Of a stretch of DNA of 15,570 bases, positions 1 to 15,570 are shown piece after piece. Positions within the stretch are counted from its first letter, which is position 1, and each line of letters starts with the position of its first letter. The notes below the pieces were generated by a model. The model was not told the origin of the DNA and did no database searches. It saw only the letters and a list, made by a program, of their open reading frames with translations. The stretch lies in the sequence record MZ666939.1; one strand, 5' to 3'. The translations under genes were made by a program, and so were the position numbers.

Positions 1-48
1 CCCCCCCACTATAATTCATCTCTGGGCTTCCTTCTCCTGTTCGGTGGC

Positions 49-67
49 GTTCCGTTCAGAACGGAAC
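49..67. repeat. 19-bp palindrome GTTCCGTTC-A-GAACGGAAC
   Basis: 49-57 is the exact reverse complement of 59-67. The same arm GTTCCGTTC recurs at 15526-15534. Confidence 0.95.
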
Positions 68-128
68 TGTTCTAAACCTAACTAGTTGCGTCTATTGGCT
101 TTCATACTAATCATACTCTTAATCGAAT

Positions 129-155
129 CAGAACATATATATACAGAACAGAACA
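129..155. repeat. CAGAACA iteron-like copies (reverse complement of the TGTTCTG units at the right end)
   Basis: CAGAACA at 129-135 and CAGAACAGAACA at 144-155. Confidence 0.6.
135..143 (+). promoter_or_regulatory. Candidate TATA box for the first operon
   Basis: ATATATATA about 57 nt upstream of ATG 200, which has a GAGGT SD. Confidence 0.4.
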
Positions 156-199
156 ATCCTATTATAACCACAAAAACTATTAAAAAAGAGGTAAAAAAA

Positions 200-355
200 A
201 TGAAAAAATATTCTATGATTGATGAGCTTGTAATCATACTAAAAAAGGTTCAAGATAATGCTTTAAATTGTACTTCTAATCAGGTTTCTAAAATAGACTA
301 TTCAGAACTTAGAAATATAGCAAAAGAATTTGCTAATAAGCATTATAATGAATAG
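200..355 (+). CDS. Hypothetical protein, 51 aa (start revised from TTG 86 to ATG 200)
   Basis: GAGGT-A8-TG initiation context. The 86-199 extension runs through the repeat region. Confidence 0.7.
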   Translation: MKKYSMIDELVIILKKVQDNALNCTSNQVSKIDYSELRNIAKEFANKHYNE

Positions 356-386
356 GCAATAGTAAAATAAGAGATGATAAAAAAAA

Positions 387-539
387 ATGGTTGAAAAAAT
401 AGCGCAATGGATTAAAGAAATGGAAAAAGAATTAACTAAGAAATATCAGGATTTCTTTGAAAACAGAACGAGTTATACCGATGAGGAAATAAAAGAACTT
501 GTAGAAAAAGCAATAGGAAAACAATTCAAAAAAAACTAA
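387..539 (+). CDS. Small helical hypothetical protein, 50 aa (MVEKIAQWIKEMEKELTKK...), not in ORF track
   Basis: Manual translation. GAGATGAT SD-like motif 8 nt upstream. Fills the gap between neighbours. Confidence 0.75.
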   Translation: MVEKIAQWIKEMEKELTKKYQDFFENRTSYTDEEIKELVEKAIGKQFKKN

Positions 540-557
540 AAAAGGGGTAAAAAAATT

Positions 558-707
558 ATGATTGAATTAAAAAGAATTTATAAATGTCCTAATTGCGACG
601 CTATCGTATTAGAGAAGGTTTATTTCAATACAATCCATCGTTGTTCCTGTGGTGTTGATACTCATGCTAATAATTTATTGCTGCAATTACAGAAAAAAGA
701 TGACTAA
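558..707 (+). CDS. Zn-ribbon microprotein, 49 aa (CPNC...CSC), not in ORF track
   Basis: Manual translation MIELKRIYKCPNCDAIVLEKVYFNTIHRCSCGV...; GGGGT SD upstream. Confidence 0.8.
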   Translation: MIELKRIYKCPNCDAIVLEKVYFNTIHRCSCGVDTHANNLLLQLQKKDD

Positions 708-711
708 AAAA

Positions 712-1038
712 ATGGTTGGAAAAAGAGAAATCGCAGACATATTAGATGTATCTGAAATTGATTTAGATTGGATATTAAATAATTATAGGGAAATATGGAA
801 TGGCTCTCCAGAACATTTAGAATTGATTGATAGAATACAAGGACAAATTTTCTCTATAACTAATAGATTATATTTACTTAGAAGTAGGATTGAATACGAT
901 ATAAATAAAGGAAATACAAATAGAAGAATTTCAAGAGCTGTGGATAACGCAAGTAAAAAAGTTGGAAATTTATTCTTAGCCTTCCTAAATTTTGAAGAAG
1001 TAAAATATTATAATCTTAAAAGAAAATTAATCAATTAG
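712..1038 (+). CDS. Protein with N-terminal HTH-like motif (start revised to 712, alternative 700)
   Basis: KREIADILDVSEIDLDWIL resembles a helix-turn-helix. The 649 start overlaps the upstream Zn-ribbon gene. Confidence 0.65.
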   Translation: MVGKREIADILDVSEIDLDWILNNYREIWNGSPEHLELIDRIQGQIFSITNRLYLLRSRIEYDINKGNTNRRISRAVDNASKKVGNLFLAFLNFEEVKYYNLKRKLIN

Positions 1039-1114
1039 ATTTTGTTTTTTAAGGTATTGGGCATTTAGCCTAATCGAAAAGCAATTAATAGAAAAGAGAT
1101 GATTGAAAAGAATG
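1039..1114 (+). repeat. ~75-bp intergenic repeat, copy 1 (oligo-T, hairpin, SD, ATG)
   Basis: ATTTTGTTTTTTAAGGTATTGGGCATTTAGCCTAATCGAAAAGCAATTAATAGAAAAGAGATGATTGAAAAGAATG, near-identical to 2134-2208 and 2514-2587. Confidence 0.97.
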
Positions 1115-1258
1115 GTTGGTTTTAAGAAATTAAAAGTAAGATTAAGCGAGAGAAACGAGAGAATATTGAGAGAGATGTGGCAATTTACTCCAACAGATTA
1201 TACTTTTGAGGTATTTGTTAATAATTGGATTAGAGTTCAATTAAGTAAGGCGAGGTAA
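1112..1258 (+). CDS. Ribbon-helix-helix-like DNA-binding protein, 48 aa, not in ORF track
   Basis: MVGFKKLKVRLSERNERILREMWQFTPTDYTFEVFVNNWIRVQLSKAR: alternating strand KLKVRL followed by two helices. Confidence 0.6.
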   Translation: MVGFKKLKVRLSERNERILREMWQFTPTDYTFEVFVNNWIRVQLSKAR

Positions 1259-1263
1259 AAGGG

Positions 1264-1725
1264 ATGGCAAAACAATATTCTGAAGTATTTAAAAGAAATT
1301 GCGTTCAAAAATTAACAGATTTGAAAGCAAAAGGGATTGTTAGAATTAATAAAGTAGAGGTTAAAAACGTGAGAGAATTAGTTAAAGCTTTAGATATTTC
1401 TAACGATTCGTTGTATAAATGGAATAAAGTTTATTTCGCAACTAAATCAAACGATAACGATGTTTCTGACGATTTTTTTGATTCCGAAACGAAACCAAAA
1501 TCAGAACAAGAAATTAGTTCAGGAGAGATTTTTGGGATTCGTTATTATTCTTGGTTTGCTAGAAATCTAGGCGTTAAAAACTATTCAAGAATGGTTTTAG
1601 TTCAATTAAAACTAGCGATTGGAAACGAATTAATTAAACAATCTGGATTAGTTGATATGAATAAAGCTAGCAAAAAATTAAGTCAGAATGCAATAAATTA
1701 TATAAAAGAACACGGGGAATTATAA
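1264..1725 (+). CDS. HTH protein with IS3-OrfA/HTH_Tnp_1-like N-terminus
   Basis: KQYSEVFKRNCVQKL...NVRELVKALDISNDSLYKWNKVY follows the YSxEFK...VxExAxxLGISxxTLYxW pattern. GAGGT SD. Confidence 0.65.
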   Translation: MAKQYSEVFKRNCVQKLTDLKAKGIVRINKVEVKNVRELVKALDISNDSLYKWNKVYFATKSNDNDVSDDFFDSETKPKSEQEISSGEIFGIRYYSWFARNLGVKNYSRMVLVQLKLAIGNELIKQSGLVDMNKASKKLSQNAINYIKEHGEL

Positions 1726-1923
1726 ATGAGTACTATTTTTGTCTATGTATGTAATAAGTGTGGTGAGAGTTTTGATGTAGAAATGGAAGATGATTTTGCT
1801 AAGATTCCTTTCGAGGGGGTATGGAGTTGTGAATGTGGTGAGCTTATTAGGGTTAGATGGGATGGGAAGGAGTTGGAATATATAAAACGCAAAAACTTAA
1901 AGAAAAACGGTGATAATCTATAA
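1726..1923 (+). CDS. Zn-ribbon protein
   Basis: CNKC...CECG; abuts the upstream stop; GGGGA SD. Confidence 0.8.
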   Translation: MSTIFVYVCNKCGESFDVEMEDDFAKIPFEGVWSCECGELIRVRWDGKELEYIKRKNLKKNGDNL

Positions 1924-2120
1924 TGACGACAAACCTAATTACTTTTATTTGTCAAGGTTGCGGAACTAAAGTTCTCGCACATATAGACCGAGAAGGTGTT
2001 TTGAGATTTAGTATTAGAGATAAGCTAATAGGTTCGGAAGTACTTCTTAATGATTTAGGTTATTATGTTTGCGTTGATTGTCATAAAAAATCAGTTTTAA
2101 GATTTAGGGTGTTTGATTAA
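1923..2120 (+). CDS. Zn-finger protein
   Basis: CQGC...CVDCH; TAATG stop/start overlap; GGTGA SD. Confidence 0.8.
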   Translation: MTTNLITFICQGCGTKVLAHIDREGVLRFSIRDKLIGSEVLLNDLGYYVCVDCHKKSVLRFRVFD

Positions 2121-2133
2121 ATTAATAATTTAT

Positions 2134-2208
2134 ATTTTGTTTTTTAAGGTATTAGGCACTTAGCTTAATCGAAAAGCAATTAATAGAAAAGAGATGATTG
2201 AAAGGATG
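2134..2208 (+). repeat. ~75-bp intergenic repeat, copy 2
   Basis: Direct comparison shows only a few differences from copies 1 and 3. Confidence 0.97.
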
Positions 2209-2352
2209 AAATGTATAACCTGTGGTGAAAACGAAGCAATTAACGATTTTTATAAAGAATGTGAAAGATGCATAGAGAAATATCAAGAACAACAAAAAGA
2301 GAGAGGTTTTTTAGAAGCATTGAAAGAATTAAGTGATTTTGGAGTGTGGTAA
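2206..2352 (+). CDS. Zn-finger microprotein, 48 aa (CITC...CERC), not in ORF track
   Basis: Manual translation MKCITCGENEAINDFYKECERCIEKY... The start is supplied by repeat copy 2 (alternative in-frame ATG 2194). Confidence 0.8.
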   Translation: MKCITCGENEAINDFYKECERCIEKYQEQQKERGFLEALKELSDFGVW

Positions 2353-2357
2353 AAAAA

Positions 2358-2513
2358 ATGGGATTTGTCGAAAGAATGAAAGAAAATCATGATTTTATTA
2401 CAGAATGTAATGATTTAGCATTTATCTTAGATATTGATATAAAGGAATTAGATAAATGGTTTAATAAATCTGAAAATAAGGAATTAATAAAACTATTAGC
2501 TTTAATCAAATAG
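2358..2513 (+). CDS. Small HTH-like protein, 51 aa, not in ORF track
   Basis: MGFVERMKENHDFITECNDLAFILDIDIKELDKWFNK...; resembles the HTH-like segment of 712..1038. Confidence 0.7.
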   Translation: MGFVERMKENHDFITECNDLAFILDIDIKELDKWFNKSENKELIKLLALIK

Positions 2514-2587
2514 ATTTTGTTTTTTAGGGTATTAGGCACTTAGCCTAATCGAAAAGCAATTAATAGAAAGAGATGATTGAAAGGATG
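2514..2587 (+). repeat. ~75-bp intergenic repeat, copy 3
   Basis: Perfect 7-bp stem ATTAGGC/GCCTAAT (2531-2549). Shares an extra 11/12 nt upstream with copy 1. Confidence 0.97.
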
Positions 2588-2947
2588 GGAATGAAATTGA
2601 ATAGAAAAATAAAGAGAGCAAATAGAGATTTTTATAGAGCAATTAAAGAAAGAGAAAATAAGAAGTTTTTAATAATGAAAGAAGGCGCAATATACGATTT
2701 AAACAAAATAGACCAAATAAGTAAATTGAAATTAGATTTTTTCTGTTTTGATTATTATTTGAATAGAAAAGAATCTAGACCTTATTTATGTCAAATCTGT
2801 AAATTAAACGAAACGTGCCAAAACAATTTTGATTATGAATGTGTAGAAACTAGCGATTTTTTATTTAATGCCAAAACAATATTTACTGTTAAGGATGATT
2901 TTCTTGATTCTTTAATTAAGAAAAGTAATAAAGCGTTGAGGGGTTAA
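2585..2947 (+). CDS. Hypothetical protein with Cys cluster (CQIC...C...C), start 2585 or 2573
   Basis: ORF track. GAGATGAT lies 7 nt before ATG 2585. Confidence 0.75.
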   Translation: MGMKLNRKIKRANRDFYRAIKERENKKFLIMKEGAIYDLNKIDQISKLKLDFFCFDYYLNRKESRPYLCQICKLNETCQNNFDYECVETSDFLFNAKTIFTVKDDFLDSLIKKSNKALRG

Positions 2948-2952
2948 ATAGA

Positions 2953-3084
2953 ATGTTATTACACGAATACAAAAAAATATTAAGAATAAGGATTTTATTA
3001 GACGAAAATCCTACTAAAGCAAAACAATTGCTAACTGATTTAATCAATAAATTTGAATTAGAACATTATAAAATGGGTGAATAA
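2953..3084 (+). CDS. Small helical hypothetical protein, 43 aa, not in ORF track
   Basis: MLLHEYKKILRIRILLDENPTKAKQLLTDLINKFELEHYKMGE; GAGGGG SD; fills gap. Confidence 0.65.
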   Translation: MLLHEYKKILRIRILLDENPTKAKQLLTDLINKFELEHYKMGE

Positions 3085-3085
3085 A

Positions 3086-3322
3086 ATGGATTTTGAGAAA
3101 AAACTAGAGATTTTTGTAAATTTTTTTTGGTTTGCTATTGGATATTTATTTGCTTTAGGGGTTTCTATCTTTACTTTAAATATTATACAAGGTAGTCCTG
3201 GTGAAGCAACTTTAGAAATGACTTATATTTTTACCGTTGGGTTTTCTGTTTTTGGAATTATTGCTGTGGTTTTTGGTTTGATTTGGTTCTTAAGTCAATA
3301 TGAAATCGTAAAAAGAGGTTAA
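3086..3322 (+). CDS. Small two-TM membrane protein (start revised to ATG 3086)
   Basis: Two hydrophobic stretches. The GTG at 3077 is part of the GGGTGA SD. Confidence 0.75.
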   Translation: MDFEKKLEIFVNFFWFAIGYLFALGVSIFTLNIIQGSPGEATLEMTYIFTVGFSVFGIIAVVFGLIWFLSQYEIVKRG

Positions 3323-3327
3323 ATAAA

Positions 3328-3477
3328 ATGAAGTGTCCAAATTGTAAAATTGTAGAATTGGATGATTGGGGATTTGATAAATATTTTTGTTCTAAATGTA
3401 AGTCAATTTTTATAGAGATATACCATTCCGAATTAAGAGAAATAAAGCAACAGAAAAAAGGTGAAGTAAATGGCTAA
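3328..3477 (+). CDS. Zn-ribbon microprotein, 49 aa (CPNC-x14-CSKC), not in ORF track
   Basis: MKCPNCKIVELDDWGFDKYFCSKCKSIF...; GAGGT SD. Confidence 0.8.
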   Translation: MKCPNCKIVELDDWGFDKYFCSKCKSIFIEIYHSELREIKQQKKGEVNG

Positions 3478-3775
3478 ATCAAATAAAGACGTTTTAAGCG
3501 TTGATATTAAGTCCGAGAAATTGGAATATACTAAGATTTTAAGAGATTGGGCGAAATTAAACGAAACAAATCAGTTCGATATGGCGTTAATGCTAATTGC
3601 TACTTTTTATAGAGCTTTTAATGTACAAGAGAGCTTTATTAGAGATAAAGGATTAATCAATGAGTTTGTAGATTATTTTACGGGATTAGAGGCAGATTAC
3701 GATAGAATGTTTGCGAAGTTATTTGATTTTAGAGATAATGTAAATAATAAAGTTATGCCTAGATTCGGAGTGTGA
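3470..3775 (+). CDS. Hypothetical protein, possible RHH-like N-terminus
   Basis: GGTGA SD. VLSVDIK strand followed by helices (weak match). Confidence 0.7.
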   Translation: MAKSNKDVLSVDIKSEKLEYTKILRDWAKLNETNQFDMALMLIATFYRAFNVQESFIRDKGLINEFVDYFTGLEADYDRMFAKLFDFRDNVNNKVMPRFGV

Positions 3776-3779
3776 AATC

Positions 3780-4022
3780 ATGGCTAAAAAGTATAAACTT
3801 CGTTGTTTTAATTGTGGAGAGTTATTTAACGAAAAAACGGAAGTTCATAGGGTTATGGGGATGCCTAATTGTGAAGCTTGTTGGGTAGAGTATCATACAG
3901 GTATAGCAGAGTTGGACGCTTATGATTATGAAATGAAGAAATGGCACGAAAGTCATCCAAATCAAGATTATGAACAATGGCAAATAGACCAAGCAAATAT
4001 AAGAAAATATGGTGAATTTTAA
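3780..4022 (+). CDS. Zn-finger protein (CFNC-x17-CEAC, LIM/treble-clef-like spacing)
   Basis: Cys pairs; GGAGTGTGA upstream. Confidence 0.75.
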   Translation: MAKKYKLRCFNCGELFNEKTEVHRVMGMPNCEACWVEYHTGIAELDAYDYEMKKWHESHPNQDYEQWQIDQANIRKYGEF

Positions 4023-4229
4023 ATGGTTAAGAGAGATTATTATTATAAATTCATAATTAAAATGGATAGAAAACTAATTAAAGGCGAAATAGAAGGAATA
4101 AAAGAAGTAATCTTTCAATATTTAGGTGAAATTCCAAGAGTAAACATACAAGGCGGAGAAGCTAATAATACGGGATATTATAAATTTAAAATTAAGAACG
4201 ATAACAAAATACAACAATTTAGGTGTTAA
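4023..4229 (+). CDS. Hypothetical protein
   Basis: Abuts the upstream stop; GGTGA SD. Confidence 0.7.
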   Translation: MVKRDYYYKFIIKMDRKLIKGEIEGIKEVIFQYLGEIPRVNIQGGEANNTGYYKFKIKNDNKIQQFRC

Positions 4230-4231
4230 AA

Positions 4232-4378
4232 TTGAAAGTAAAATATTCTAGTTTGAGAATTAAAAGAAAAAACAGAATTTTAATATTCACCTGTACTTAT
4301 TGCGAATTTAATTATTATCTAAATAGATATTATCCTAAAGCGATTTTATTGATGATAATTGAGAAATTAAATAATTAA
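4232..4378 (+). CDS. Small basic protein, 48 aa with CTYC, TTG start, not in ORF track
   Basis: AGGTG SD at 4221-4225; ends just before the T-tract. Confidence 0.55.
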   Translation: MKVKYSSLRIKRKNRILIFTCTYCEFNYYLNRYYPKAILLMIIEKLNN

Positions 4379-4523: not shown

Positions 4524-4769
4524 ATGGCCCCTCCAGTAAATCGGGTAATTATGATAGTTATAGCCTTAATGGTAATTGCAGTTATAATTCCTTTAGCAAT
4601 AGGAATGATTGCTGTTATGGATTTAGCAGTAATTACGTATCCTAATGGAAGTACAGGTGTTTTAAAAGACGTTGCAGACCCTGCTGTAATTATACTTTTG
4701 ACTGTTCTTTTACCGATACTTGCCGTTATTGGTTTAATTATGTATTTTCTACCAAGTAGAACAGATTAA
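4524..4769 (+). CDS. Major capsid protein 1, spindle-virus-type hydrophobic helical hairpin
   Basis: 81 aa; two long hydrophobic helices joined by a polar loop with an NGS sequon; GGTGG SD; tandem paralog follows. Confidence 0.85.
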   Translation: MAPPVNRVIMIVIALMVIAVIIPLAIGMIAVMDLAVITYPNGSTGVLKDVADPAVIILLTVLLPILAVIGLIMYFLPSRTD

Positions 4770-4797: not shown

Positions 4798-5058
4798 ATG
4801 GCTCCCCCAGTAAATAGAGTAATTATGATTGCTATAGCCTTAATGGTAATTGCTGTTATTGTTCCTTTAGCAATAGGAATGATTGCTGTTATGGATGAAG
4901 TTTTAATTACAGTCCCATTTAATTTGACTGGATTAAACGAAACGCAACTTCCTCTAAAAAGTGTTGTCGACCCTTCTCTTATTGTACTTTTGACTGTTCT
5001 TTTACCGATACTTGCTGTTATTGGTTTAATTATGTATTTTTTACCCCGGAAAAGTTAA
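4798..5058 (+). CDS. Major capsid protein 2, paralog (start revised to ATG 4798, 86 aa)
   Basis: MAPPVNRVIMI start nearly identical to paralog 1. The GTG at 4786 is part of the GGTGA SD. Loop sequons NLT and NET. Confidence 0.85.
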   Translation: MAPPVNRVIMIAIALMVIAVIVPLAIGMIAVMDEVLITVPFNLTGLNETQLPLKSVVDPSLIVLLTVLLPILAVIGLIMYFLPRKS

Positions 5059-5073
5059 AACTAATTTTAAATT

Positions 5074-5091
5074 CTTTTTTTTTTTATTTTA
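5074..5091 (+). terminator. Oligo-T terminator after the capsid genes
   Basis: C-T11-ATTTTA 16 nt after the stop; would let capsid mRNA exceed downstream mRNA. Confidence 0.65.
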
Positions 5092-5107
5092 TTGAAAAAG
5101 TAAGGTT

Positions 5108-5281
5108 ATGAACGAATTAACAGAAATGGAAATAGAACGATTAGAATTAATTAAACAACAATTAGAGGTTAAATTACAAGTGAAAATTATGGTTTACGTC
5201 GTAGTTTATTGTTCTTTTTTTATGGTGTTATTTTGTATTACGTTAGCAATTGTAAAAAGTTTTAAAGAGGGATTTTATTGA
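5108..5281 (+). CDS. Small single-TM protein, 57 aa, not in ORF track
   Basis: MNELTEMEIERLELIKQQLEVKLQVKIMVYVVVYCSFFMVLFCITLAIVKSFKEGFY; TTGA overlap with the next gene. Confidence 0.75.
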   Translation: MNELTEMEIERLELIKQQLEVKLQVKIMVYVVVYCSFFMVLFCITLAIVKSFKEGFY

Positions 5282-8199
5282 AAAGAAAATCGTTGTTAAT
5301 AATTTCGTTATTTATAATTTTATTTGGTTTTAATTGTTTTAATTTAACTCAAAACGTAAACGCTATTTCTAACGTAAATTACACTTTTATAGACAATATT
5401 TTTTACGAATCTGACGATATTGAATTTGACGATTCTTTTAATTTACAAAACGAATCCATTGCGACAGAAGAATATGATGCTACTTATTCTTTTACTGATA
5501 TTGCAGAAGGAGAAATTCCTAACGGTTGGATTAAATTTTACGTAGCTTCAGTTATTAACAATTTAGACGGTCACGATAAAGTTCTACAATTAGGTAATAT
5601 TACGGCAACAAATTATATTTACAATAATTTTACAACTCAAAACGCTAGTTTTATGGAATTTTGGTTTAGAACTAAAGACGTATCGAAAAGAAGTGAAATA
5701 GATTTAATAAATAGAACTGGAGAAGTTAACGTAATTACGTTAAAAATGCACGAAAACGAACTTAAATATTACAATGGTGAGAGTATAACTGCTACTGGTT
5801 TAACTATGTCTAATAACGTTTGGTATCATATTAAATTAAAATGGTATCTTAATTATACTTATGATTATTGGATTAATGGAATATTATATGGTGATAAAGC
5901 AAATTTTATTGTTAATAATGGAACTAATGGGCTTAGACTTCGTAGTTATTCTGTTTTGAGTTTTTTTGACGCTTTTGGATATGGTTGGGAAGCTTTTTAT
6001 GATTTTACTGACGAAGTTGGTTTAACAAATACTGCAATATCTTACGTTGATTCGTTATCTGGAGACGATACAAATAAATTAGCAATTGTTTTAAATGAAA
6101 ATGATGGACGTTTTGAAGTTGTAAAGTTTACTTCAAATGGAGATGATGATACAATAGCTTATATTAGAAATTATTTTTCTGAAACTTATGGAATAATTGA
6201 ATTGTGGGTAAAATATATTGATTTAGGCGTTGGCCGTTTTAATTTTTATGGATATTCTGATTTTGGAGAAGCTATATTAGTAGCATCTTTAAAATCTGAT
6301 ATAAATAAATTCCAAATCCAATATGGTGATGGTATTGGTGGTTCTGAAATAGTAGAAATAGATGGTATTTCTAATACTTGGTATCATTTAAAAACTGAGT
6401 TTAATATGAGTTCTGATACTCATAATGTTTGGATTAATGGCGAACTTTTAGTAGATAATAAACCCTTTTATAATGATAGAAGAGGCGCTTCGATAACAAG
6501 ATACGATCTTTATTTTTCTTATGGTCAAGGAATAAATTCTTTAGAAGGTTATGTTGACTCTATTGGCTATTCTTGGAAACCTGGTTATAAAGTAAACGAT
6601 AATATTGTTCCTGTTTTTAATACGACTGACAATTTAATCGTAGCAAAAGACGAATTTGCTTTTGACGAAAACGGTGAATTATATGAAATAGGAGTAAAGG
6701 ATGCTTGTGGTTGGGAGGGAAACGATATTGATTACACTTATCTTATTCAAGATACTGAACAATATTACGATAAAAAATATAAAATTCATTGTGAAGGAGA
6801 TACAGATAATAATTTTATAAGAAAATATTACGACGTAAATGAAGGAGTTTATAATTTTACTCTTAATATTAGTTATTTAAAAATGTTAAATGCTGGTTCA
6901 TCTTATTGGTGGGCTATATATAATACATTACTTAATATAACTACTGTAATTGAAATAACTTGCACTGCTCTTTTTACTTTTGAGTTAAAATATTTAGATG
7001 ATATTGACTTAGAAACTTATACACTTATCGGTGAGATAGATAATGAAATTACTATTGATAGAGAATTAACGTTATTTATTGGGGATTTGTGTTATCTTAC
7101 TTATAAAGATACAACTGAATATTACGAAGTTATATTTCCAAAATTAACAGTAGGAAAAGGATTATACGAAATTTCTTTTGCTGGTGGTTTAAATGACGTT
7201 CTCTTTTATCAAAGAGTTTATATAGATAGTATAGGTGTTTTTGTTAATGGTACAAATTTAAACGACGATTTTGGTAGTTATTCTTTAAATTTAAATTCTG
7301 CTACTTGGTATTCAAAAACAAGTAATATAATAAATGTAAATGCTTTAGGTATTTTTAGTTTTGGAGTGCATTCAGAAACGGATTCAGCGTCGTTAAAAGG
7401 ATTTTATAATTATACCAATACTAAAACTTGGAATGTATATAATTATTTTCCTTATATAATTGACCCTTCACTTATTTTTATGACAAATAGTACAATTTCT
7501 ATTTCAAACATAAAAATAACCGGAGTTAAAATGAACGACGAAACAACTAATTTTATTCCTGATTTTTATAATTATAACATTAATATTGACGAAAGTTATT
7601 TTTACGTTGATTCATCTAATAGATTACAATTCAATCTAATAGCAAACGATAACGATACAGAATGGATTGAATTAAGGTTCGACATATTAATACAAACAAC
7701 GGAAAATAGAAGTATTCAATTTAAATCTAATATAAACGGTATATCTAAAGGGTACGTACATTTAGCGTATTGGGGTTATGCTATTACTAACATTTATTTT
7801 CCTTATTCCCCTACTACTACGACAAGTTATTTACCACAAGGATACGTAATTTTTACAATGTCAATTATAATATCTGACCAAGATATTACTTGGTACGACG
7901 TTTGTAATGGTTATATTACTAATTTAAAACTAATACATACCCCTGGAGGTATTGGACCAATTGATATACTTTATTTTGATATTTCTGTTTTAATTGCAAC
8001 TATAATACCATTAATTATTTTACTTGCACCTGCATTAGCTTTAAGCGTTAAATTTGGAAGAAAAATAATACTTCCAATGTTTATTTTTATGAGTTTATTA
8101 TGTGTTATAACTAATTTAATTCCAATATGGCTTTTTTTCGTAATTGCTATTGCTTGTGGGTCCTTAATTTTTGTAAGTCAAAAAAGAGGTGTTGATTAA
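5278..8199 (+). CDS. Large membrane-anchored virion glycoprotein / adhesin (VP4-like role) with two LamG/ConA-like repeats
   Basis: N-terminal signal-like segment, beta-rich body, about 19 N-x-S/T sequons, repeated WYHxK...WINGxL motif, C-terminal TM helices. Confidence 0.8.
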   Translation: MKRKSLLIISLFIILFGFNCFNLTQNVNAISNVNYTFIDNIFYESDDIEFDDSFNLQNESIATEEYDATYSFTDIAEGEIPNGWIKFYVASVINNLDGHDKVLQLGNITATNYIYNNFTTQNASFMEFWFRTKDVSKRSEIDLINRTGEVNVITLKMHENELKYYNGESITATGLTMSNNVWYHIKLKWYLNYTYDYWINGILYGDKANFIVNNGTNGLRLRSYSVLSFFDAFGYGWEAFYDFTDEVGLTNTAISYVDSLSGDDTNKLAIVLNENDGRFEVVKFTSNGDDDTIAYIRNYFSETYGIIELWVKYIDLGVGRFNFYGYSDFGEAILVASLKSDINKFQIQYGDGIGGSEIVEIDGISNTWYHLKTEFNMSSDTHNVWINGELLVDNKPFYNDRRGASITRYDLYFSYGQGINSLEGYVDSIGYSWKPGYKVNDNIVPVFNTTDNLIVAKDEFAFDENGELYEIGVKDACGWEGNDIDYTYLIQDTEQYYDKKYKIHCEGDTDNNFIRKYYDVNEGVYNFTLNISYLKMLNAGSSYWWAIYNTLLNITTVIEITCTALFTFELKYLDDIDLETYTLIGEIDNEITIDRELTLFIGDLCYLTYKDTTEYYEVIFPKLTVGKGLYEISFAGGLNDVLFYQRVYIDSIGVFVNGTNLNDDFGSYSLNLNSATWYSKTSNIINVNALGIFSFGVHSETDSASLKGFYNYTNTKTWNVYNYFPYIIDPSLIFMTNSTISISNIKITGVKMNDETTNFIPDFYNYNINIDESYFYVDSSNRLQFNLIANDNDTEWIELRFDILIQTTENRSIQFKSNINGISKGYVHLAYWGYAITNIYFPYSPTTTTSYLPQGYVIFTMSIIISDQDITWYDVCNGYITNLKLIHTPGGIGPIDILYFDISVLIATIIPLIILLAPALALSVKFGRKIILPMFIFMSLLCVITNLIPIWLFFVIAIACGSLIFVSQKRGVD

Positions 8200-9186: not shown

Positions 9187-9190
9187 AATA

Positions 9191-9628
9191 ATGAGAAATA
9201 AAAAGAAAAAGTATTACGCTGTATTTTGTATAAAAGAGCACGATGTCTTTAACATGTTAGCTAAGAAGCGGATTAGAGGCTCAAATCAGATAGTTCGCTT
9301 TAGAAAAGGAACTTATGTCGTAAATGTTTCTTTTCCTACTTATGTTAAAGGTTTGAACGTATTTTACTTCATAGATATTAAGAAAGGGCAACAATTAGCA
9401 AAAAATACAGAAATAAATATCGCTAAAGGGCACATTCTTTTTAAAGAGAATGCTAAGGATAAACCGTTAATGTCGCCTAAGTTTCTTGATATGTTAATAT
9501 CTCAAAAGATTGTAGGGCAATTAACATCCAACTTATCAAATAACGCCTTGAAAATGAACATCATTACTCTAATTGTTGGGGCTATCATAGGTGGGTTAAT
9601 AGGATATATTATTGCGGGGATGATTTAA
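9191..9628 (+). CDS. Basic protein with C-terminal TM anchor
   Basis: IITLIVGAIIGGLIGYIIAGMI at the C-terminus. Confidence 0.8.
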   Translation: MRNKKKKYYAVFCIKEHDVFNMLAKKRIRGSNQIVRFRKGTYVVNVSFPTYVKGLNVFYFIDIKKGQQLAKNTEINIAKGHILFKENAKDKPLMSPKFLDMLISQKIVGQLTSNLSNNALKMNIITLIVGAIIGGLIGYIIAGMI

Positions 9629-9970
9629 GTGAGTTTAAAGAGTTCATCTATGGATGATATGAAACCAGATGACGACGATTTAACTTTTGAGAAAATATTA
9701 AACGCTTTATTAGATGGCAAAAAGAACCTTGATTTAAAAACGCACATTAATAAACCAAAACAATTAGCGGGTCTTAAAATCGTAGAAAATGTTCTTAAAG
9801 ATTCAAATTGTAGAAAATCAAGTGGAATAATTAACGCATTTACCCAAAAATATCTAAGGTATATGGTAAGTTATGATAGATTAAGTAGAAAAGAGACTAT
9901 TAGAGCAATTTCAGAGCCAAGAAAAGAGATTGAAAGCGAAAAAAGTAAGTTTGCTAAGAAATTAAATTAA
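9629..9970 (+). CDS. Hypothetical soluble protein next to the ATPase (GTG start)
   Basis: GGGGATGA SD; abuts both neighbours. Confidence 0.75.
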   Translation: MSLKSSSMDDMKPDDDDLTFEKILNALLDGKKNLDLKTHINKPKQLAGLKIVENVLKDSNCRKSSGIINAFTQKYLRYMVSYDRLSRKETIRAISEPRKEIESEKSKFAKKLN

Positions 9971-9971: not shown

Positions 9972-10667
9972 ATGCTAGTTTGTATCTTAGGGGCAAAAGG
10001 TTCGGGAAAAACGCTATTTACTACACGAATGGCAATTAATTCAAAAAGAGAAGTTTACGCTAATTATTGGATAAATATTGAGAATTATAAGCCTTTAGAA
10101 ATAATGGATTTTATAGATTTGCCTAATAATGTAGATGTTTTGATAGATGAGGGTTATACGTGGTTAGAATCCAGAACATCGAGTTTTTTTTTGAATCGTT
10201 TTTTGTCTTATATCTTATGGCAATCCCGAAAGCGAACTATAGACATCTATTTAACTGCCCAACGCTTTAGGTCGCTTGATTTAAGGTTCAGAGACGAAAG
10301 CGACATTATCGTTAAATGTAAGACTAGAACTAATTTAAAGAAAGACGATTTTAAATACGCTATTTTATGGATTGCGGAGAATAGGGAAAAGCATTTCACT
10401 TTATCGTATAATGACGCTAAAAAATATTTTGATTTATTCGATACTTATGAAATCGTTGAACCATACACTAAAGAGCAATTAGAGTTTAAATTATTAGAAG
10501 GCGACCCGGAAAAAAGATGGAAAAAAGCAATGGAAATAGGGGATATAATTTCTAAAGGAATTGATTTAATAACACATCCAATTATTAAAGCAAGGTTAAT
10601 GAAATTTGGATACGATTCGAGTTATGAGCCTTTAGTGTATGTTTATCTTAAAGGCTTAGTAAGTTAA
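9972..10667 (+). CDS. Zot/inovirus pI-like P-loop morphogenesis ATPase
   Basis: Walker A GAKGSGKT (9990-10013), Walker B VLIDEG, QSRK and YLTAQ motifs followed by LDLRFR. Confidence 0.88.
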   Translation: MLVCILGAKGSGKTLFTTRMAINSKREVYANYWINIENYKPLEIMDFIDLPNNVDVLIDEGYTWLESRTSSFFLNRFLSYILWQSRKRTIDIYLTAQRFRSLDLRFRDESDIIVKCKTRTNLKKDDFKYAILWIAENREKHFTLSYNDAKKYFDLFDTYEIVEPYTKEQLEFKLLEGDPEKRWKKAMEIGDIISKGIDLITHPIIKARLMKFGYDSSYEPLVYVYLKGLVS

Positions 10668-11042: not shown

Positions 11043-11287
11043 CTGATTGGGATAGACTAGTGGATTATATCATCGATTATTTTCCCGACCCTTCATATTC
11101 AAGTCAAGATATTAGAGATTGGGCAAATAAGAGCGTTCCCGCATGGAAGTATATGGATAATAATACAAAAGACAAGATTTTGGGTGATTGGGAAAACTTT
11201 ATTTTGCCAGAAGTTAAGAGTTGGCTTAGACGAATGAGTGAAGGTTTTAGAGAGAGAATAAGAAGGTTTCTGGGGAGGGCTTATTAA
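11039..11287 (+). CDS. Trp-rich helical hypothetical protein (TTG start)
   Basis: GGTGA SD; TTGA overlap upstream; TAATG overlap downstream. Confidence 0.8.
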   Translation: MTDWDRLVDYIIDYFPDPSYSSQDIRDWANKSVPAWKYMDNNTKDKILGDWENFILPEVKSWLRRMSEGFRERIRRFLGRAY

Positions 11288-11499
11288 TGAGATTCTGTGA
11301 AATTTGTAGTAAATGTGAGATTGGATTAATGATTCATAATGCGTTGTACACATGGAAATGTAATCATTGCGGATTCAGTTATAAAATTGACCCATCGGGG
11401 AGAATTCCTAAAATTACGATTTTAAATCGTGGAAATAATAAAAGACGCTATATTTTGCCTTTAGATAGAAAAAACAATCATAGAGGGGTGAAATGCTAA
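11287..11499 (+). CDS. Zn-ribbon protein
   Basis: CEICSKC...WKCNHCGF. Confidence 0.8.
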   Translation: MRFCEICSKCEIGLMIHNALYTWKCNHCGFSYKIDPSGRIPKITILNRGNNKRRYILPLDRKNNHRGVKC

Positions 11500-11500: not shown

Positions 11501-12409
11501 GTGAAGCAAAAGACTAAAATTAATTTTAAGAGAAGTTTCACCTGCGATAAATCGATTGCAAAAGGGATTAAGTTTTTGAATAAAAATGGATTTTATACCG
11601 TTGGATGTTGTTCGGGTTTAAAGATTGACCACGATAACGAAAGAAATAAAATGTATATCGAATTTGCGGGATTAAGCAAGGCAAAAGAGCTTAAGGTTAA
11701 ACATATAGCAAATCAATTTGGTTTTAATGTTAAAAATAAAAGGATATTGAGAATTGAGAGCGAAAATGATGATAAATTAGAAATGTTTAACGATTTTATT
11801 TCCTATTTGAAATATAATTCCCAGAAACTTAGTTTAAGAGCAATCGGAATCTCTAATTGGGCTTACGATTCTGAAAAGAAAAAAAGATATTCAATTCAAT
11901 TCTACGATTACGATTTTAACGGGGATATAGAACACATTCCAAGAGAGGATTTATTGCGAATATTAGAGATATTTCCTTACGATTGCTTAATGTATGAGAC
12001 TAAGGGGGGCGTTCATTTTATTAGCTTTTCGATTCTGTTGGGGCTTCATGTCTCTAAAGCGAGGGTTTTAGAAACGAGCAAAAGCTTAGAAGGTCAAGAT
12101 TATTGGACTGAAGGAAAAGATTTAACGTTGAGAGTAAGTGCAAAATGGAAATTAAGGCTTTTTAGAAAGCGTAAAATCGTGTCAAAAAAGCCAAAATTTA
12201 AAGGATTAATTAAAGGTCCGGATAATTTAATCAAAACTTCAAATACCTTTCTTAATTCGAAAAATCCGAATAAATACGTCGTTTCTAAAAATCATTTGGA
12301 ATTTTATCGGAAATATATGGATTTGCCCGATTGGGTTTATGAGCTATATGCTGATTGCGATATGAGAGATTTAAGGATTAAGAATTACCATTACAAAACG
12401 AGGGATTGA
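11501..12409 (+). CDS. Two-domain protein: TYW3-like N-terminal motif plus AEP primase-polymerase-like C-terminal domain
   Basis: N-terminus DKSIAKGIKFLNKNGFYTVGCCSG. C-terminus FYDYD (motif I-like), YETKGGVHF (motif II-like), DLTLRV (motif III-like). Confidence 0.55.
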   Translation: MKQKTKINFKRSFTCDKSIAKGIKFLNKNGFYTVGCCSGLKIDHDNERNKMYIEFAGLSKAKELKVKHIANQFGFNVKNKRILRIESENDDKLEMFNDFISYLKYNSQKLSLRAIGISNWAYDSEKKKRYSIQFYDYDFNGDIEHIPREDLLRILEIFPYDCLMYETKGGVHFISFSILLGLHVSKARVLETSKSLEGQDYWTEGKDLTLRVSAKWKLRLFRKRKIVSKKPKFKGLIKGPDNLIKTSNTFLNSKNPNKYVVSKNHLEFYRKYMDLPDWVYELYADCDMRDLRIKNYHYKTRD

Positions 12410-12414: not shown

Positions 12415-12558
12415 ATGGGATTAATGAAATATTTGGCAATTGCTTTTGAAAATAGAAAGCATTCATGCTCTAAATGTCTCTATGGTAAACACGAGAATCT
12501 GGATGTTTGTTATAAATGTGTTAAAAAAGAATCGCAATTTAAACCTAAGAGGGATTGA
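12415..12558 (+). CDS. Zn-finger microprotein, 47 aa (CSKC-x10-CYKC), not in ORF track
   Basis: Manual translation; GAGGGA SD. Confidence 0.75.
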   Translation: MGLMKYLAIAFENRKHSCSKCLYGKHENLDVCYKCVKKESQFKPKRD

Positions 12559-12559
12559 A

Positions 12560-13198
12560 ATGAATCTAAAAAAGAGAACTGAAAAAATAAGATATAATAG
12601 CGTACTTTTAATTGTTAAACATATTACGCCTTCTTTATATCAAAAGATTTTACCAATAATTAGTAATAATGTTAAACTTTTGTCAAAAGTTCCAAGACCC
12701 TCTATTCTTTTTATGAAAGAATATTTTAATCAAGATTCTGTAATTGGTGCTGAGATTGGTGTAGATAAAGGAAGAAATGCTAAAAGTATTTTAACTGAAT
12801 TAAACATTGATAAATTGTACTTAGTGGATGCATGGTTTAATTATAAAGAAATTCAAGCAAATAGACCTCAAAAGACTAATTTTAAATTTGTTTTAAGAGA
12901 ATTTGAAAATGATAAGAGAGTAGAAATAATTAGAGCTTTTTCTATAAATGCTGTAAAAGAGATTGTTGATAATTCTCTTGATTTTGTTTATATTGACGCA
13001 AATCATTTGTATGAATTTGTTTATCAAGATATTAATTTATGGTATAATAAAGTGAAAAAAGGGGGAATTATTGCCGGACACGACATTTTTGGTCATATTG
13101 GTGTTTTAAAAGCTGTTAAAAGATTTTGTAATGAAAAGAATTATGTTTTTAATATAGAAATCCCAGATTGGTATTTTATTAAAGGAGGCTTAAAATGA
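12560..13198 (+). CDS. Class I SAM-dependent methyltransferase, Methyltransf_24-like (start revised to ATG 12560)
   Basis: GAEIGVDKG, LYLVDAW, LDFVYIDANHLYE and GGIIAGHD motifs. Confidence 0.85.
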   Translation: MNLKKRTEKIRYNSVLLIVKHITPSLYQKILPIISNNVKLLSKVPRPSILFMKEYFNQDSVIGAEIGVDKGRNAKSILTELNIDKLYLVDAWFNYKEIQANRPQKTNFKFVLREFENDKRVEIIRAFSINAVKEIVDNSLDFVYIDANHLYEFVYQDINLWYNKVKKGGIIAGHDIFGHIGVLKAVKRFCNEKNYVFNIEIPDWYFIKGGLK

Positions 13199-13917
13199 TT
13201 GAAAAAGAAATTGTAGGTCAAATACCCTATGATATTGAGAAAAGGCAAAACGAAATTCCTAATAAGAATATGATGGGTTTTAAAAGCGAATTATTAAGAT
13301 TTCCTAAGTATCAAAAATTAAACCAAATCAATGAACATAGAAATCAAAACAAAAATAGGGAACTCGCCTTTTATTACGAAACAAGCGCGGTATTAGGGAA
13401 ATTACAGCTTTCTATTAAATTGAGGGCTTTAATATTGAGAAATGCTGAGAACTTTTATTCAGTATTAGGGTATAGTACAAACCATAGAGGTGTAAAGGTT
13501 CTAATTCCTGTGTCTGTTTATCTTACTTGTTTAGAACACTTTATTTTCGTTAGACGTAAAGAATTTTATCAGTTTTGTACTAAGCATAATTTTGACCGTT
13601 GTTTGAAAGCAATTCTCATAAAGAATAATACATTAAGATTAAAACTATTATCTAAAGATTTTAGAATCAAAACTATAAAGGTTCAATTAAACGGATTACA
13701 AACTCATTTTTATCTCAATGGTTTGTTTTTTCAGAAAGCTTTCGAGAATTTGGATAAATATTTCAATAAAGTAAAAAACGCTATGAATACATCAATAACC
13801 GCGATTATTTTTGATTTAACTGCACATCAATTAATGGGGAAATTTATTCTTATGTCTGAAGTTTGTCATTTTCTTGGAATAACGCAATCTACAGTCTTTA
13901 GGAGGCGCTTATATTGA
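13195..13917 (+). CDS. tfb: Divergent TFB/TFIIB-like transcription factor (two cyclin repeats plus C-terminal HTH, no Zn ribbon)
   Basis: RELAFYYETSAVLGKLQL, RGVKVLIPVSVYLTC and MSEVCHFLGITQSTVFRR align by eye with archaeal TFB segments RNLAFALSELDR...LxL, RGR...AAxYxAC and QREVAxVAGVTEVTIRNR. Confidence 0.7.
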   Translation: MIEKEIVGQIPYDIEKRQNEIPNKNMMGFKSELLRFPKYQKLNQINEHRNQNKNRELAFYYETSAVLGKLQLSIKLRALILRNAENFYSVLGYSTNHRGVKVLIPVSVYLTCLEHFIFVRRKEFYQFCTKHNFDRCLKAILIKNNTLRLKLLSKDFRIKTIKVQLNGLQTHFYLNGLFFQKAFENLDKYFNKVKNAMNTSITAIIFDLTAHQLMGKFILMSEVCHFLGITQSTVFRRRLY

Positions 13918-14318
13918 TTGAAATACGCGATAAAAACTTTAGCAAAAATTATTCTAACGGTTGTCGTCATTCCAAAAATCTAAATACTCTATTTGATATT
14001 AGTAATAGCGGTGTAGATTATTATAACGATCATAACATTGGATTTGAGTTTAAAGAAAGTTTTATGGAAAATCCTAAAAATATTTTTTTTAAAGTACCAA
14101 GGTACCAGGCCAAAATTTCAGATTATTTTGTTTTTTGTGTAAGTGCCATAGAATATATTTTAGTCCCAAAAGAATATATTTTAGAAAGATTTAAATTTAA
14201 AACTAAAAGGAAAAACGCTAATATCCGAATTACTACAATTCGAGATATGGCAATATATACTACTATTGATGTAAACGATTTGAAAGAATATATCGATAAA
14301 ATAGAGGTGAAAGGCTAA
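13914..14318 (+). CDS. PD-(D/E)xK-type nuclease-like protein (TTG start)
   Basis: GVDYY...IGFEFKES motif; GGAGG SD. Confidence 0.6.
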   Translation: MIEIRDKNFSKNYSNGCRHSKNLNTLFDISNSGVDYYNDHNIGFEFKESFMENPKNIFFKVPRYQAKISDYFVFCVSAIEYILVPKEYILERFKFKTKRKNANIRITTIRDMAIYTTIDVNDLKEYIDKIEVKG

Positions 14319-14319
14319 T

Positions 14320-14517
14320 TTGATTCAAATAATCGATAAAAGAGAGGGAAAATATTCAATTAAGAATGTTGATTCTAGTTTTATGATTAAATATAACGGT
14401 GAGATTTACGCTTTAAAAGATTTGGAAGTTATAGGTTTAAAGATTAGTGCTGTGGTTCTTAAAGATAATGAGACGGATTTAATATATAAGCGAGTGATAA
14501 AACCTGAAATCGATTAA
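14320..14517 (+). CDS. Small beta-rich hypothetical protein (TTG start)
   Basis: GAGGTGA SD. Confidence 0.7.
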   Translation: MIQIIDKREGKYSIKNVDSSFMIKYNGEIYALKDLEVIGLKISAVVLKDNETDLIYKRVIKPEID

Positions 14518-14545
14518 TTTTACAGTTAAGAAAAGAGAATTGATA

Positions 14546-14881
14546 ATGGGATTAAAAAAGCAAACTATTAGATGTTTATTTATTCCTACTTATGAGGTTG
14601 GGGAAATCGTTAAGATTAATTTTAAGAAAAAACTATTGTTTCACGCCAAAATAGAAAGGATTTATCCTAAATTAATGAAAGATATTACTGAAAAAGAAGC
14701 TATTTTAGATGGCTTTTCAAACCTTTTAGATTGTCAAAAAAAATTGTTAGAACTTAATAAAATTAAATCTTTAAATCGATATTGTTTTATCGTTGGTTTT
14801 GAACCAATATCAACGCTAATAGACTTTATAGATGAGAAATCTAATATTCTTGATGTTAATAGCTATTGGATTAAGGAGTAG
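14546..14881 (+). CDS. ASCH/PUA-like domain protein (start ATG 14546 or TTG 14540)
   Basis: KKQTIR...YEVGEIV...DITEKEAILDGFSN...IVGF pattern. Confidence 0.8.
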   Translation: MGLKKQTIRCLFIPTYEVGEIVKINFKKKLLFHAKIERIYPKLMKDITEKEAILDGFSNLLDCQKKLLELNKIKSLNRYCFIVGFEPISTLIDFIDEKSNILDVNSYWIKE

Positions 14882-14887
14882 ATTAAG

Positions 14888-15025
14888 GTGAATGAAAGAA
14901 TTGAGTGTTTAGATTGCCCTTGTTATATGTATTGCACTATGGATTCTTGTATTGATGATATTGATTTAAATGAAAATGATTACAAAAATATGGAGATTAT
15001 TGATTATTTTGAGCGAAAAATATAA
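14888..15025 (+). CDS. Cys-rich acidic microprotein, 45 aa (CxxCxCxxxCxxxxC), GTG start, not in ORF track
   Basis: MNERIECLDCPCYMYCTMDSCIDDIDLNENDYKNMEIIDYFERKI; GGAG SD 9 nt upstream. Confidence 0.65.
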   Translation: MNERIECLDCPCYMYCTMDSCIDDIDLNENDYKNMEIIDYFERKI

Positions 15026-15063
15026 AAACGAATAAGTCAAAATTTAGAATCTTGAGTTGGTGA

Positions 15064-15180
15064 ATGACGATTAAGATTGTTAGATTCTTTAGAATCTTAT
15101 TTACCAAAAAGAGATTAATGAAAAATAAGAAATTACAATATTTATTTAATAGAATGTTTGAGAGAAATAAAAAGGAGTAA
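15064..15180 (+). CDS. Very basic 38-aa peptide, not in ORF track
   Basis: MTIKIVRFFRILFTKKRLMKNKKLQYLFNRMFERNKKE; its end carries the SD for the next gene; its own SD spacing is poor. Confidence 0.45.
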   Translation: MTIKIVRFFRILFTKKRLMKNKKLQYLFNRMFERNKKE

Positions 15181-15186
15181 ATTAAG

Positions 15187-15510
15187 ATGTTAGCTAAAAT
15201 TACCAAAACATCAAATCAAATCGATTTTATTTTTGAGTGTAATTTTACTAATTTTTTAAAGAGGTTGCAGTTAAATCTTGCTCTCTTAAAAGAAAGGAAA
15301 GAAGTAAAAAGGATTATTCCTTTATTCTTGTATCCTATTAAGAGATTTGACATACAGAAAAGCGAAAACTCTCTTTTCTTAGTTAGCATAATACAGCGTA
15401 CCCCGTACCGTATCACCTCCGACCTAATCTGCAGATTAGGTATTATAGCAAAATGGTTTCTTTTGTTCTGTTATTGTTCTGGTTTGAATAATCATATTAC
15501 AAAAGCCTAA
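15187..15510 (+). CDS. Hypothetical protein; 3' third overlaps palindrome/repeat DNA
   Basis: AAGGAG SD 9 nt upstream of the ATG. Confidence 0.55.
   Translation: MLAKITKTSNQIDFIFECNFTNFLKRLQLNLALLKERKEVKRIIPLFLYPIKRFDIQKSENSLFLVSIIQRTPYRITSDLICRLGIIAKWFLLFCYCSGLNNHITKA
15422..15441. repeat. Perfect 20-bp palindrome ACCTAATCTGCAGATTAGGT
   Basis: Read directly; 10+10 self-complementary. Confidence 0.95.
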
Positions 15511-15524
15511 GACCTTAACCTTTA

Positions 15525-15570
15525 TGTTCCGTTCTGGTTTTGTTCTGTTCTGTTTTGTTCTGTTCTGTTT
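15525..15570. repeat. Pentamer tandem array, including (TGTTC TGTTC TGTTT)x2 at 15541-15570
   Basis: Six consecutive TGTTY units preceded by TGTTC CGTTC TGGTTT; more GTTCTG copies at 15465-15485. Confidence 0.9.

Follow-up and report, generated by a model that had tools for sequence, protein, structure and literature searches.

A candidate primase-like replication protein and recurrent contig ends in the genome of Lokiarchaeota virus WyrdV1

Genome content and published status

We analyzed a 15,570-nt stretch of DNA (record MZ666939.1), referred to below at its full length as the window, with emphasis on its two ends and on gp31 (11501–12409, + strand), a gene annotated as hypothetical that we consider a candidate for the viral replication protein. 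A megablast search of the window against phage and archaeal-virus records returned one full-length match, with 100% identity over positions 1–15570. This record, MZ666939.1, is titled 'Lokiarchaeota virus WyrdV1, complete genome' and names Candidatus Lokiarchaeota archaeon 6Rcc_78 in its host field; the same contig is also present, as JAHLWL010000009.1, in the metagenome-assembled genome (MAG) assembly GCA_019057935.1. The window is WyrdV1 itself, a His1-like spindle-shaped virus of Lokiarchaeia whose genome has been published. A preliminary description, made from the sequence without database searches, had proposed a spindle virus, probably of Asgard/Loki-type archaea, with a layout like that of wyrdviruses and a genome that might already be known, and had suggested a BLASTN comparison with GenBank as a check; the exact match, the Lokiarchaeota MAG and a CRISPR spacer described below bear this out.

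WyrdV1 was assembled from Hikurangi margin MAGs, is targeted by one Asgard CRISPR spacer and has been linked to a Lokiarchaeota MAG. The 'wyrdviruses', proposed as a separate family, were founded on this genome (Medvedeva et al., 'Viruses of Asgard archaea', bioRxiv 10.1101/2021.07.29.453957). The same work described its pair of His1-like capsid proteins, its adhesin and its pI/Zot-like ATPase and noted that it lacks a polymerase or rolling-circle endonuclease; GenBank and the source paper (bioRxiv 10.1101/2021.07.29.453957) both accept the genome as complete. At the genome level nothing is new: the virus, the assignment of its host, the virion module and the lack of a polymerase or endonuclease were all in print in 2021–22, and the gene calls made here match the published annotation. 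What goes beyond the source paper is the identification of gp31 as a replication candidate, the evidence on ends and topology, and a comparison of replication modules with a relative, L153. In the source paper gp31 is a hypothetical protein, WyrdV1 is given no replication protein, and neither ends nor topology are discussed; a WyrdV1 primase, telomere-like ends and iterons go unmentioned there (bioRxiv 10.1101/2021.07.29.453957), and later literature mentioning wyrdviruses adds nothing on WyrdV1 replication. The GenBank taxonomy line of MZ666939.1 reads Fuselloviridae, despite the lack of an integrase and the separate family proposed in the paper.

All 39 annotated genes lie on the + strand, and the map of open reading frames (ORFs) and their translations agree with the annotation. 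GC skew is positive along the whole genome, with cumulative skew climbing steadily. Pfam scans, which covered all 39 products at E ≤ 0.1, detected no integrase, PolB (DNA_pol_B_2) or HUH endonuclease; no tRNAs were found in the window, and no Rfam family matched. The absence of integrase and PolB, which is already published, had been noted in the preliminary description along with a pair of capsid proteins, an adhesin-like protein, transmembrane proteins, a Zot-like ATPase and a single-strand gene order, all of which we confirmed.

A candidate replication protein, gp31

gp31 encodes a protein of 302 aa, with a TYW3-like N-domain (residues 3–108) and a C-domain (residues ~109–302) that resembles archaeo-eukaryotic primases (AEPs). 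Its candidacy draws on structure models, conserved residues and distant homology. An exhaustive profile search recovered 60 family representatives (about 60 clusters at 50% identity), and none of 91 homolog clusters carries a Pfam domain. The family occurs in two forms, one of ~300 aa and one of ~190 aa that corresponds to the C-terminal two thirds only, most members being devoid of the TYW3-like domain. Models of gp31 had a predicted local distance difference test score (pLDDT) of 86.6 overall and of 88.3 for the C-domain alone, the latter with a predicted template modeling score (pTM) of 0.85. When the C-domain model was compared to 48,161 representative chains, the top matches were almost all AEPs.

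Two AEP motifs can be recognized among the conserved residues. Among 48 diverse members, position 136 is always D or E, and D138, R211, K215 and Y298 do not vary. Motif I of gp31, FYDYD, places an [DE]xD signature at the end of a predicted strand, as in AEPs, and reads FLDID in Sulfolobales Beppu filamentous virus 1 (SBFV1). Motif II, KGGVHF, supplies the AEP-type GxH, with G170 and H172 each at least 90% conserved in the same 48 members. DxD and H lie 34 residues apart, and in the sequence of pRN1 ORF904 the distance from D111/E113 to H145 is the same. A candidate third acid, D200, is invariant in 61 closer sequences and aligned to a D in SBFV1. In addition, one distant member (P0142) matches the Pfam family PF24387, 'AEP-like', at E 1.2e-4; a search with this bridging member yielded no further relatives.

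Homologs of the C-domain are found in filamentous viruses of Sulfolobales. In a library of predicted viral structures, its best matches were uncharacterised proteins of Sulfolobales Beppu filamentous virus 2 (SBFV2; E 8.6e-3) and phage 1 (E 1.9e-2), with probability 0.99. Alignment of the gp31 family profile with SBFV1 ORF56-180 gave an hhalign probability of 86% over 94 columns, and the motifs pair in order (GISN/GITN, FYDYD/FLDID, TKGGVHF/TKYGYHI, QDY/VDV and LRVSAKW/LRIYGKY for gp31/SBFV1). We also ran hmmsearch with the gp31 profile on all ORFs of SFV1, AFV1, His1, Muninn virus and a PolB-bearing wyrdvirus, and the only match was SFV1 ORF55-180 (E 2e-8). This ORF (MH447526.1, 31445–31987) has no annotation, and the surrounding region includes genes for a helicase, a Zn-finger protein and a Cas4-like nuclease; no replication protein is identified in the SFV1 paper.

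Several observations weigh against this assignment. The structural scores between the C-domain and AEPs are low, with root-mean-square deviations of 4.7–5.7, within the range that the tool warns about; it is the agreement among the listed matches, and no individual score, that underlies the fold call. Foldseek searches of the PDB with both gp31 models returned nothing at E ≤ 0.001, the family profile found no AEP among PDB sequences (chance matches only), and hhalign of the gp31 family against the pRN1 prim-pol domain was null. D200 is replaced in several distant members and H172 is Q in several close ones, while the match to PF24387 concerns one sequence and falls below the curated cut-off. 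Compared with the AEP superfamily (PriS, PrimPol, LigD PolDom and pRN1 ORF904), which provides its best structural matches, the gp31 C-domain, with its [DE]xD on a strand and GxH 34 residues on, is much smaller (~190 aa), has no significant sequence or Foldseek match and is ambiguous in its third motif. On balance, the models and motifs make it likely that the C-domain has an AEP-type fold. Whether gp31 acts as a replication primase or initiator we regard as evenly poised, and we refer to it as putative in that role.

The N-domain resembles the fold of TYW3, a tRNA-modifying methyltransferase. About 105 of its residues align to TYW3 chains of 166–191 residues, less than the ~190-aa core of the full-length enzyme. 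The N-domain amounts to about half a TYW3, and therefore we do not file gp31 as a TYW3 enzyme. Directly upstream of gp31 lies gp30 (11287–11499), which encodes a small Zn-ribbon protein with a weak match to Zn_ribbon_PriA (E 0.0015). We considered gp30 as a conserved Zn-ribbon partner of gp31 and dropped the idea, as gp30 is kept only in the closest relatives.

Replication modules of related viruses

L153 (JGI Ga0247412_1302915, 16773 nt) is a wyrdvirus that encodes a protein-primed PolB, a dUTPase and ThyX. A profile search of its ORFs found no gp31 homolog, and the contig shows neither terminal repeats nor any relation to the WyrdV1 ends. At the DNA level, L153 and WyrdV1 share about 75–82% identity in their capsid genes, their membrane-protein block and the C-terminal part of the adhesin, and 87% in the methyltransferase gene. 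Conversely, no PolB or Rep domain is on record for the gp31-bearing contigs NODE_118, k127_181243, L137, L144 and L146. Thus, close relatives carry either gp31 or PolB but not both, which lends indirect support to gp31 as an alternative replication function. The sequence comparison suggests that WyrdV1 and L153 differ by an exchange of complete replication modules, apparently a recent one, with the virion module kept in common.

Given the low scores, the possibility that gp31 is not a replication enzyme deserves weight, although we find it somewhat doubtful. The host replisome alone would then copy the genome, brought in by small viral proteins that bind DNA or by host initiators with affinity for the repeats, which was the second option considered for WyrdV1 in the source paper (bioRxiv 10.1101/2021.07.29.453957). 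gp31 would have another role, such as nucleic-acid modification through its TYW3-like domain. The fact that the paper itself raised copying by the host counts in favor of this view, as do the weak AEP similarity, the non-conserved D200 and the likeness of the N-domain to a tRNA-modifying methyltransferase. Against it, most family members do without the TYW3-like domain, and gp31 and PolB exclude each other in close relatives. Moreover, the charged residues ([DE]xD, GxH, R and K) are kept from Asgard to Sulfolobales viruses, and conservation over this range points to an active site in gp31.

Other differences among the relatives were apparent. In L146, a GNAT acetyltransferase (4968–5519) directly follows the gp31 homolog; the corresponding position in WyrdV1 is occupied by a small ORF and the methyltransferase. 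As judged from these gene orders, the accessory enzyme downstream of gp31 is variable. The contig k127_181243 (L140 plus L135; European Nucleotide Archive ERZ936117, 29423 nt) is WyrdV1-like but about twice the size, with the same gene order and a gp31 homolog. Two of its products are giant adhesin-like proteins, 1312 and 1410 aa long, and the contig contains a 26-nt perfect inverted repeat, located at bases 9–34 from the left end and 255–280 nt from the right end.

We searched genome collections (one-genome-per-species contigs) for gp31 relatives and obtained three matches, all on contigs of 1.8–7.5 kb. Two of these short contigs belong to Promethearchaeota MAGs and one to an unclassified bin; one gp31 homolog is named from a Promethearchaeia MAG. 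No gp31 relatives were found in IMG/VR. The MAG placement of these sequences fits an Asgard host. One caveat here is that the host assignment of WyrdV1 itself draws on the record, the single spacer of the source paper and MAG binning. None of the related contigs fetched has host flanks, and they give no sign of integration; the non-integrating lifestyle suggested in the preliminary description draws on this absence and on that of an integrase.

Genome ends and topology

The left end region (1–160) begins with a C7 run (1–7), followed by a palindrome with 9-nt arms (49–67) and CAGAAC words (129–154). The right end region (15412–15570) contains a palindrome (15421–15440) and a tandem array of TGTTC (15525–15570; 8.8 copies, or a 15-mer in three copies) that reaches the last base and is the top-scoring tandem repeat of the genome in Tandem Repeats Finder. 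We found no terminal direct or inverted repeat in the window. Positions 126–156 and 15540–15570 are 81% complementary, a similarity of repeat words only. The word GTTCTG/CAGAAC occurs 18 times in the genome, versus 2.85 expected, and 11 of the 18 fall in the two end regions: seven copies on the + strand in the last 106 nt (15465–15567) and four on the – strand in 57–154. Hairpin z-scores were –3.2 in the right end region and –2.4 for the hairpin of the left end region, the latter reaching –3.9 in NODE_118.

The ends recur in other assemblies. Logan contigs from runs SRR30888626 and SRR14803097, 100% identical to the window, end on its last base and do not enter the C run, so the same base is the end in three assemblies, two of which are k=31 Logan assemblies of other runs. 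On the left side, Logan contigs are broken by repeated cassettes, and hence this agreement concerns the right end. For the left end, the informative relative is NODE_118 (ERZ3603973, 18.6 kb), a collinear genome about 72% identical to WyrdV1. It starts at the homologous base, with C5 in place of C7 followed by the same 16-mer; the first ~75 nt of the window align with its first bases, and the 49–67 palindrome is kept through a paired C-to-T and G-to-A change. Scaffold_4546 (L146; gp31 81% identical) is alignable to the right end and terminates ~15 nt short of it, in CTA-G12-C, and k127_181243 ends in a G6 run. Scans of viral and metagenome contigs with a 16-base pattern from the conserved left end gave chance matches only, none of them window-like, and no contig that we fetched spans the supposed 15570|1 junction.

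Could the right-end stop be an assembly artefact? The exactly periodic run is ~34 nt long, shorter than the ~46 nt needed for a loop in a k=31 graph, and so a collapsed repeat would not explain the stop. Random breaks of a circle would not coincide, and therefore the shared positions point either to physical ends or to a point that resists sequencing. Taken together, these contigs, which are assemblies rather than reads, make it probable that WyrdV1 DNA is linear with fixed ends. Two considerations pull the other way. The terminal C and G runs of the contigs are oriented as poly-G read artefacts would be and may not be natural, and fixed contig ends could stem from an unsequenceable junction.

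The main competing view of the ends, a circular genome, strikes us as rather unlikely. Here a bidirectional origin would lie at the 15570|1 junction, with opposed GTTC repeats flanking a hairpin, and the contig would merely lack an overlap. On a circular map, the seven + strand GTTCTG words (15465–15567) and the four – strand words (57–154) would indeed flank a more GC-rich stretch containing the palindrome. Archaeal origins have inverted recognition boxes on both sides of the unwinding site, and the circular layout of opposed repeat words resembles this arrangement. A circle would also accord with ends that are not inverted repeats of each other and with the circularity of two other wyrdviruses (bioRxiv 10.1101/2021.07.29.453957). 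However, it fits poorly with the lack of a direct terminal repeat, with a common last base in three assemblies, with diverged relatives that start and stop at homologous positions, and with a junction that no fetched contig spans. Cumulative GC skew shows no mid-genome switch of the kind expected for a bidirectional origin, though gene orientation could mask one. The preliminary description had placed the start of replication in the junction region; with no direct terminal repeat, three assemblies sharing the last base and relatives starting or ending at homologous positions, this placement is not supported.

It is very improbable that the contig is incomplete, with a polymerase or integrase on a missing piece, or that it is a provirus cut from a host contig: it is metagenomic and without terminal repeats, and the relatives NODE_118 (18.6 kb) and k127_181243 (29.4 kb) are longer, but both of its ends coincide with ends of independent contigs, the extra length of NODE_118 is internal (more small genes and cassettes), no relative is flanked by host genes (the genome-collection matches being only 1.8–7.5 kb contigs), and GenBank and the source paper take the genome as complete.

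Comparison with other archaeal viruses

The alphalipothrixviruses SFV1, SBFV1 and SBFV2 encode a protein (ORF55/56-180) that is homologous to the C-domain of gp31 and keeps its conserved motifs, whereas their virion and capsid proteins are unrelated to those of WyrdV1 and their hosts belong to another phylum. The SFV1 genome is linear with perfect 337-bp inverted terminal repeats, according to the SFV1 paper; WyrdV1 has no such repeats, and the SFV1 protein lacks the TYW3-like domain. In the first 126 nt of the SFV1 repeats, we found four TAGAAC words ~25–30 nt apart, in the same polarity as CAGAAC in WyrdV1. This resemblance is suggestive, not proof, of a module that combines protein and repeats.

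AFV1 (Captovirus) resembles WyrdV1 in having a G/C homopolymer at its extreme ends and, inward of it, clusters of GTTCT/GTTCA pentamers, of which the first 330 nt contain 11 and the last 330 nt contain 14, and four of the five commonest end hexamers of WyrdV1 are among the top six of AFV1. In contrast to WyrdV1, the strand polarity relative to the end is opposite, and profile search detects no gp31 homolog; the resemblance may be convergent or due to chance. Bettstetter and colleagues are said to have called the AFV1 ends telomere-like in 2003. In the replication literature on AFV1 and SIRV2, we found no usable statement on the AFV1 ends.

His1 (Halspiviridae) shares with WyrdV1 a small two-segment capsid protein, a genome of comparable size (14.5 kb) and many small CxxC proteins. 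It has a protein-primed PolB and imperfect inverted terminal repeats, the two hallmarks of Halspiviridae considered here, and WyrdV1 has neither; the capsid similarity is itself weak in our hands (probability 43% over 20 columns). Fuselloviridae (SSV1-like) likewise share features with WyrdV1, namely a predicted spindle virion, two capsid paralogs and an ATPase that, like fusellovirus B251, is without a membrane domain. WyrdV1 differs in lacking the tyrosine integrase typical of that family. For a circular double-stranded DNA genome, as in fuselloviruses, the WyrdV1 contig offers no evidence: it has no direct terminal repeat, and its ends recur across independent assemblies.

Virion genes

Two paralogous genes (4524–4769 and 4798–5058) encode the His1-like major capsid proteins, which are 81 and 86 aa long and each have a pair of hydrophobic segments; they were recognized by these segments, by homologs (30 clusters) and by the HHpred result of the source paper. 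A profile of 22 wyrdvirus capsid proteins aligned to His1 VP21 at the second membrane helix with the weak hhalign score given above, and tblastn against phage records matched the protein itself only. The His1-like assignment is thus weak on our evidence and depends mainly on the published HHpred result, which we did not fully reproduce. The two capsid genes share two DNA blocks of 88% identity (4523–4636/4797–4910 and 4663–4753/4955–5045) around a divergent middle loop.

Downstream lies the adhesin gene (5278–8199). Its product, of 973 aa, starts with a signal or anchor and finishes with a membrane anchor, as judged from hydrophobic segments, and the proteins at this position in relatives carry Laminin_G_3 and DUF2341 domains; it is probably the receptor-binding protein. 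The next five genes, gp22–gp26 (8200–9970), are a conserved block within the morphogenetic module that encodes mostly membrane proteins, assigned by hydrophobic segments and collinearity and in agreement with the source paper: gp22–gp25 are membrane proteins, as is gp20, and the block is collinear in relatives, at about 72–82% DNA identity. The block is followed by a pI/Zot-like AAA+ ATPase gene without a membrane domain (9972–10667). The ATPase has a Walker A motif, and its PHROG matches are 'Zot-like toxin' (E 3.6e-7), 'head morphogenesis' (E 2.2e-8) and, weakly, M13 protein I; tblastn matched 'Zonula occludens toxin' genes and Muninn virus, and comparison with His1 ORF16 revealed no real similarity. 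The ATPase probably drives virion assembly and egress. WyrdV1 thus shows the features that define a wyrdvirus, namely its identity to the published genome, two-segment capsid proteins of ~80 aa, and an adhesin accompanied by the five-gene block and a pI-like ATPase.

Regulatory cassettes and remaining genes

The left arm (95–4378) consists of small genes for Zn-finger proteins, a helix-turn-helix protein and unknowns, as annotated, with only weak Zn-ribbon and helix-turn-helix Pfam matches. It contains three copies of a promoter/operator-like intergenic cassette of ~88 nt (1024–1111, 2119–2206 and 2499–2586), each comprising a T-rich stretch and the palindrome ATTAGGC-N5-GCCTAAT and extending into the start of the next gene. 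NODE_118 carries ~7 sites that match the cassette with up to 96% identity. As the genomes overall are only ~72% identical, the cassette is far better kept than its surroundings. The right-end palindrome (15421–15440) is perfect, CCTAATC-TGCA-GATTAGG, and shares a half-site with that of the cassette; CCTAAT occurs nine times, versus 2.9 expected, and a similar palindrome, CCTAATC-GTGA-GATTAGG, lies near base 100 of the relative contig L003. From sequence alone, the cassette and right-end palindromes may be binding sites of one regulator.

Downstream of gp31 are genes for an S-adenosylmethionine-dependent methyltransferase (12503–13198), annotated as a carbohydrate O-methyltransferase (Pfam Methyltransf_24, E 9e-17; PHROG 2675), a TFB/TFIIB-like transcription factor (13195–13917; GenBank annotation and source paper, with no Pfam match) and an ASCH-domain protein (14546–14881; annotation and a weak Pfam ASCH match, E 0.016). 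Across the window, GATC occurs twice and CATG 10 times, each compared to ~37 expected from base composition, a scarcity that suggests avoidance of restriction or methylation sites.

Discussion

We think it probable that the data are best explained by a WyrdV1 that combines priming by an AEP-like gp31, linear DNA with fixed ends and non-lytic exit. In such a virus, gp31 would hold the place taken by PolB or an endonuclease in other wyrdviruses; it would prime or initiate DNA synthesis, and host polymerases would then carry on. The non-identical linear ends, with their GTTCT/AGAAC repeats and conserved palindrome, would be the likely sites of replication start or of end maintenance. Virions would leave the cell without lysis, powered by the ATPase, as the source paper proposes. 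The preliminary description had likewise envisaged replication by an AEP-like protein together with host enzymes, and for the first part of this proposal gp31 now offers moderate support, in its structural matches, its motifs, the PF24387 match and the homology to SBFV1.

We tentatively raise the possibility, itself on the unlikely side, that WyrdV1 represents a third mode of wyrdvirus replication, alongside those based on a protein-primed PolB and on a rolling-circle endonuclease, in which a linear genome has fixed, non-identical AGAAC/GTTCT ends and is initiated or maintained by a small, hitherto unrecognized AEP-like family shared with SFV1, where the same terminal word occurs in the same polarity. 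A linear genome without its own polymerase raises the question of how the ends are copied. The source paper left WyrdV1 without a replication protein, and gp31 supplies a specific candidate that is open to laboratory testing. Its family is also present in SFV1-like filamentous viruses, likewise without a known replication protein. If this reading is true, a replication module would have crossed both virus realms and archaeal phyla.

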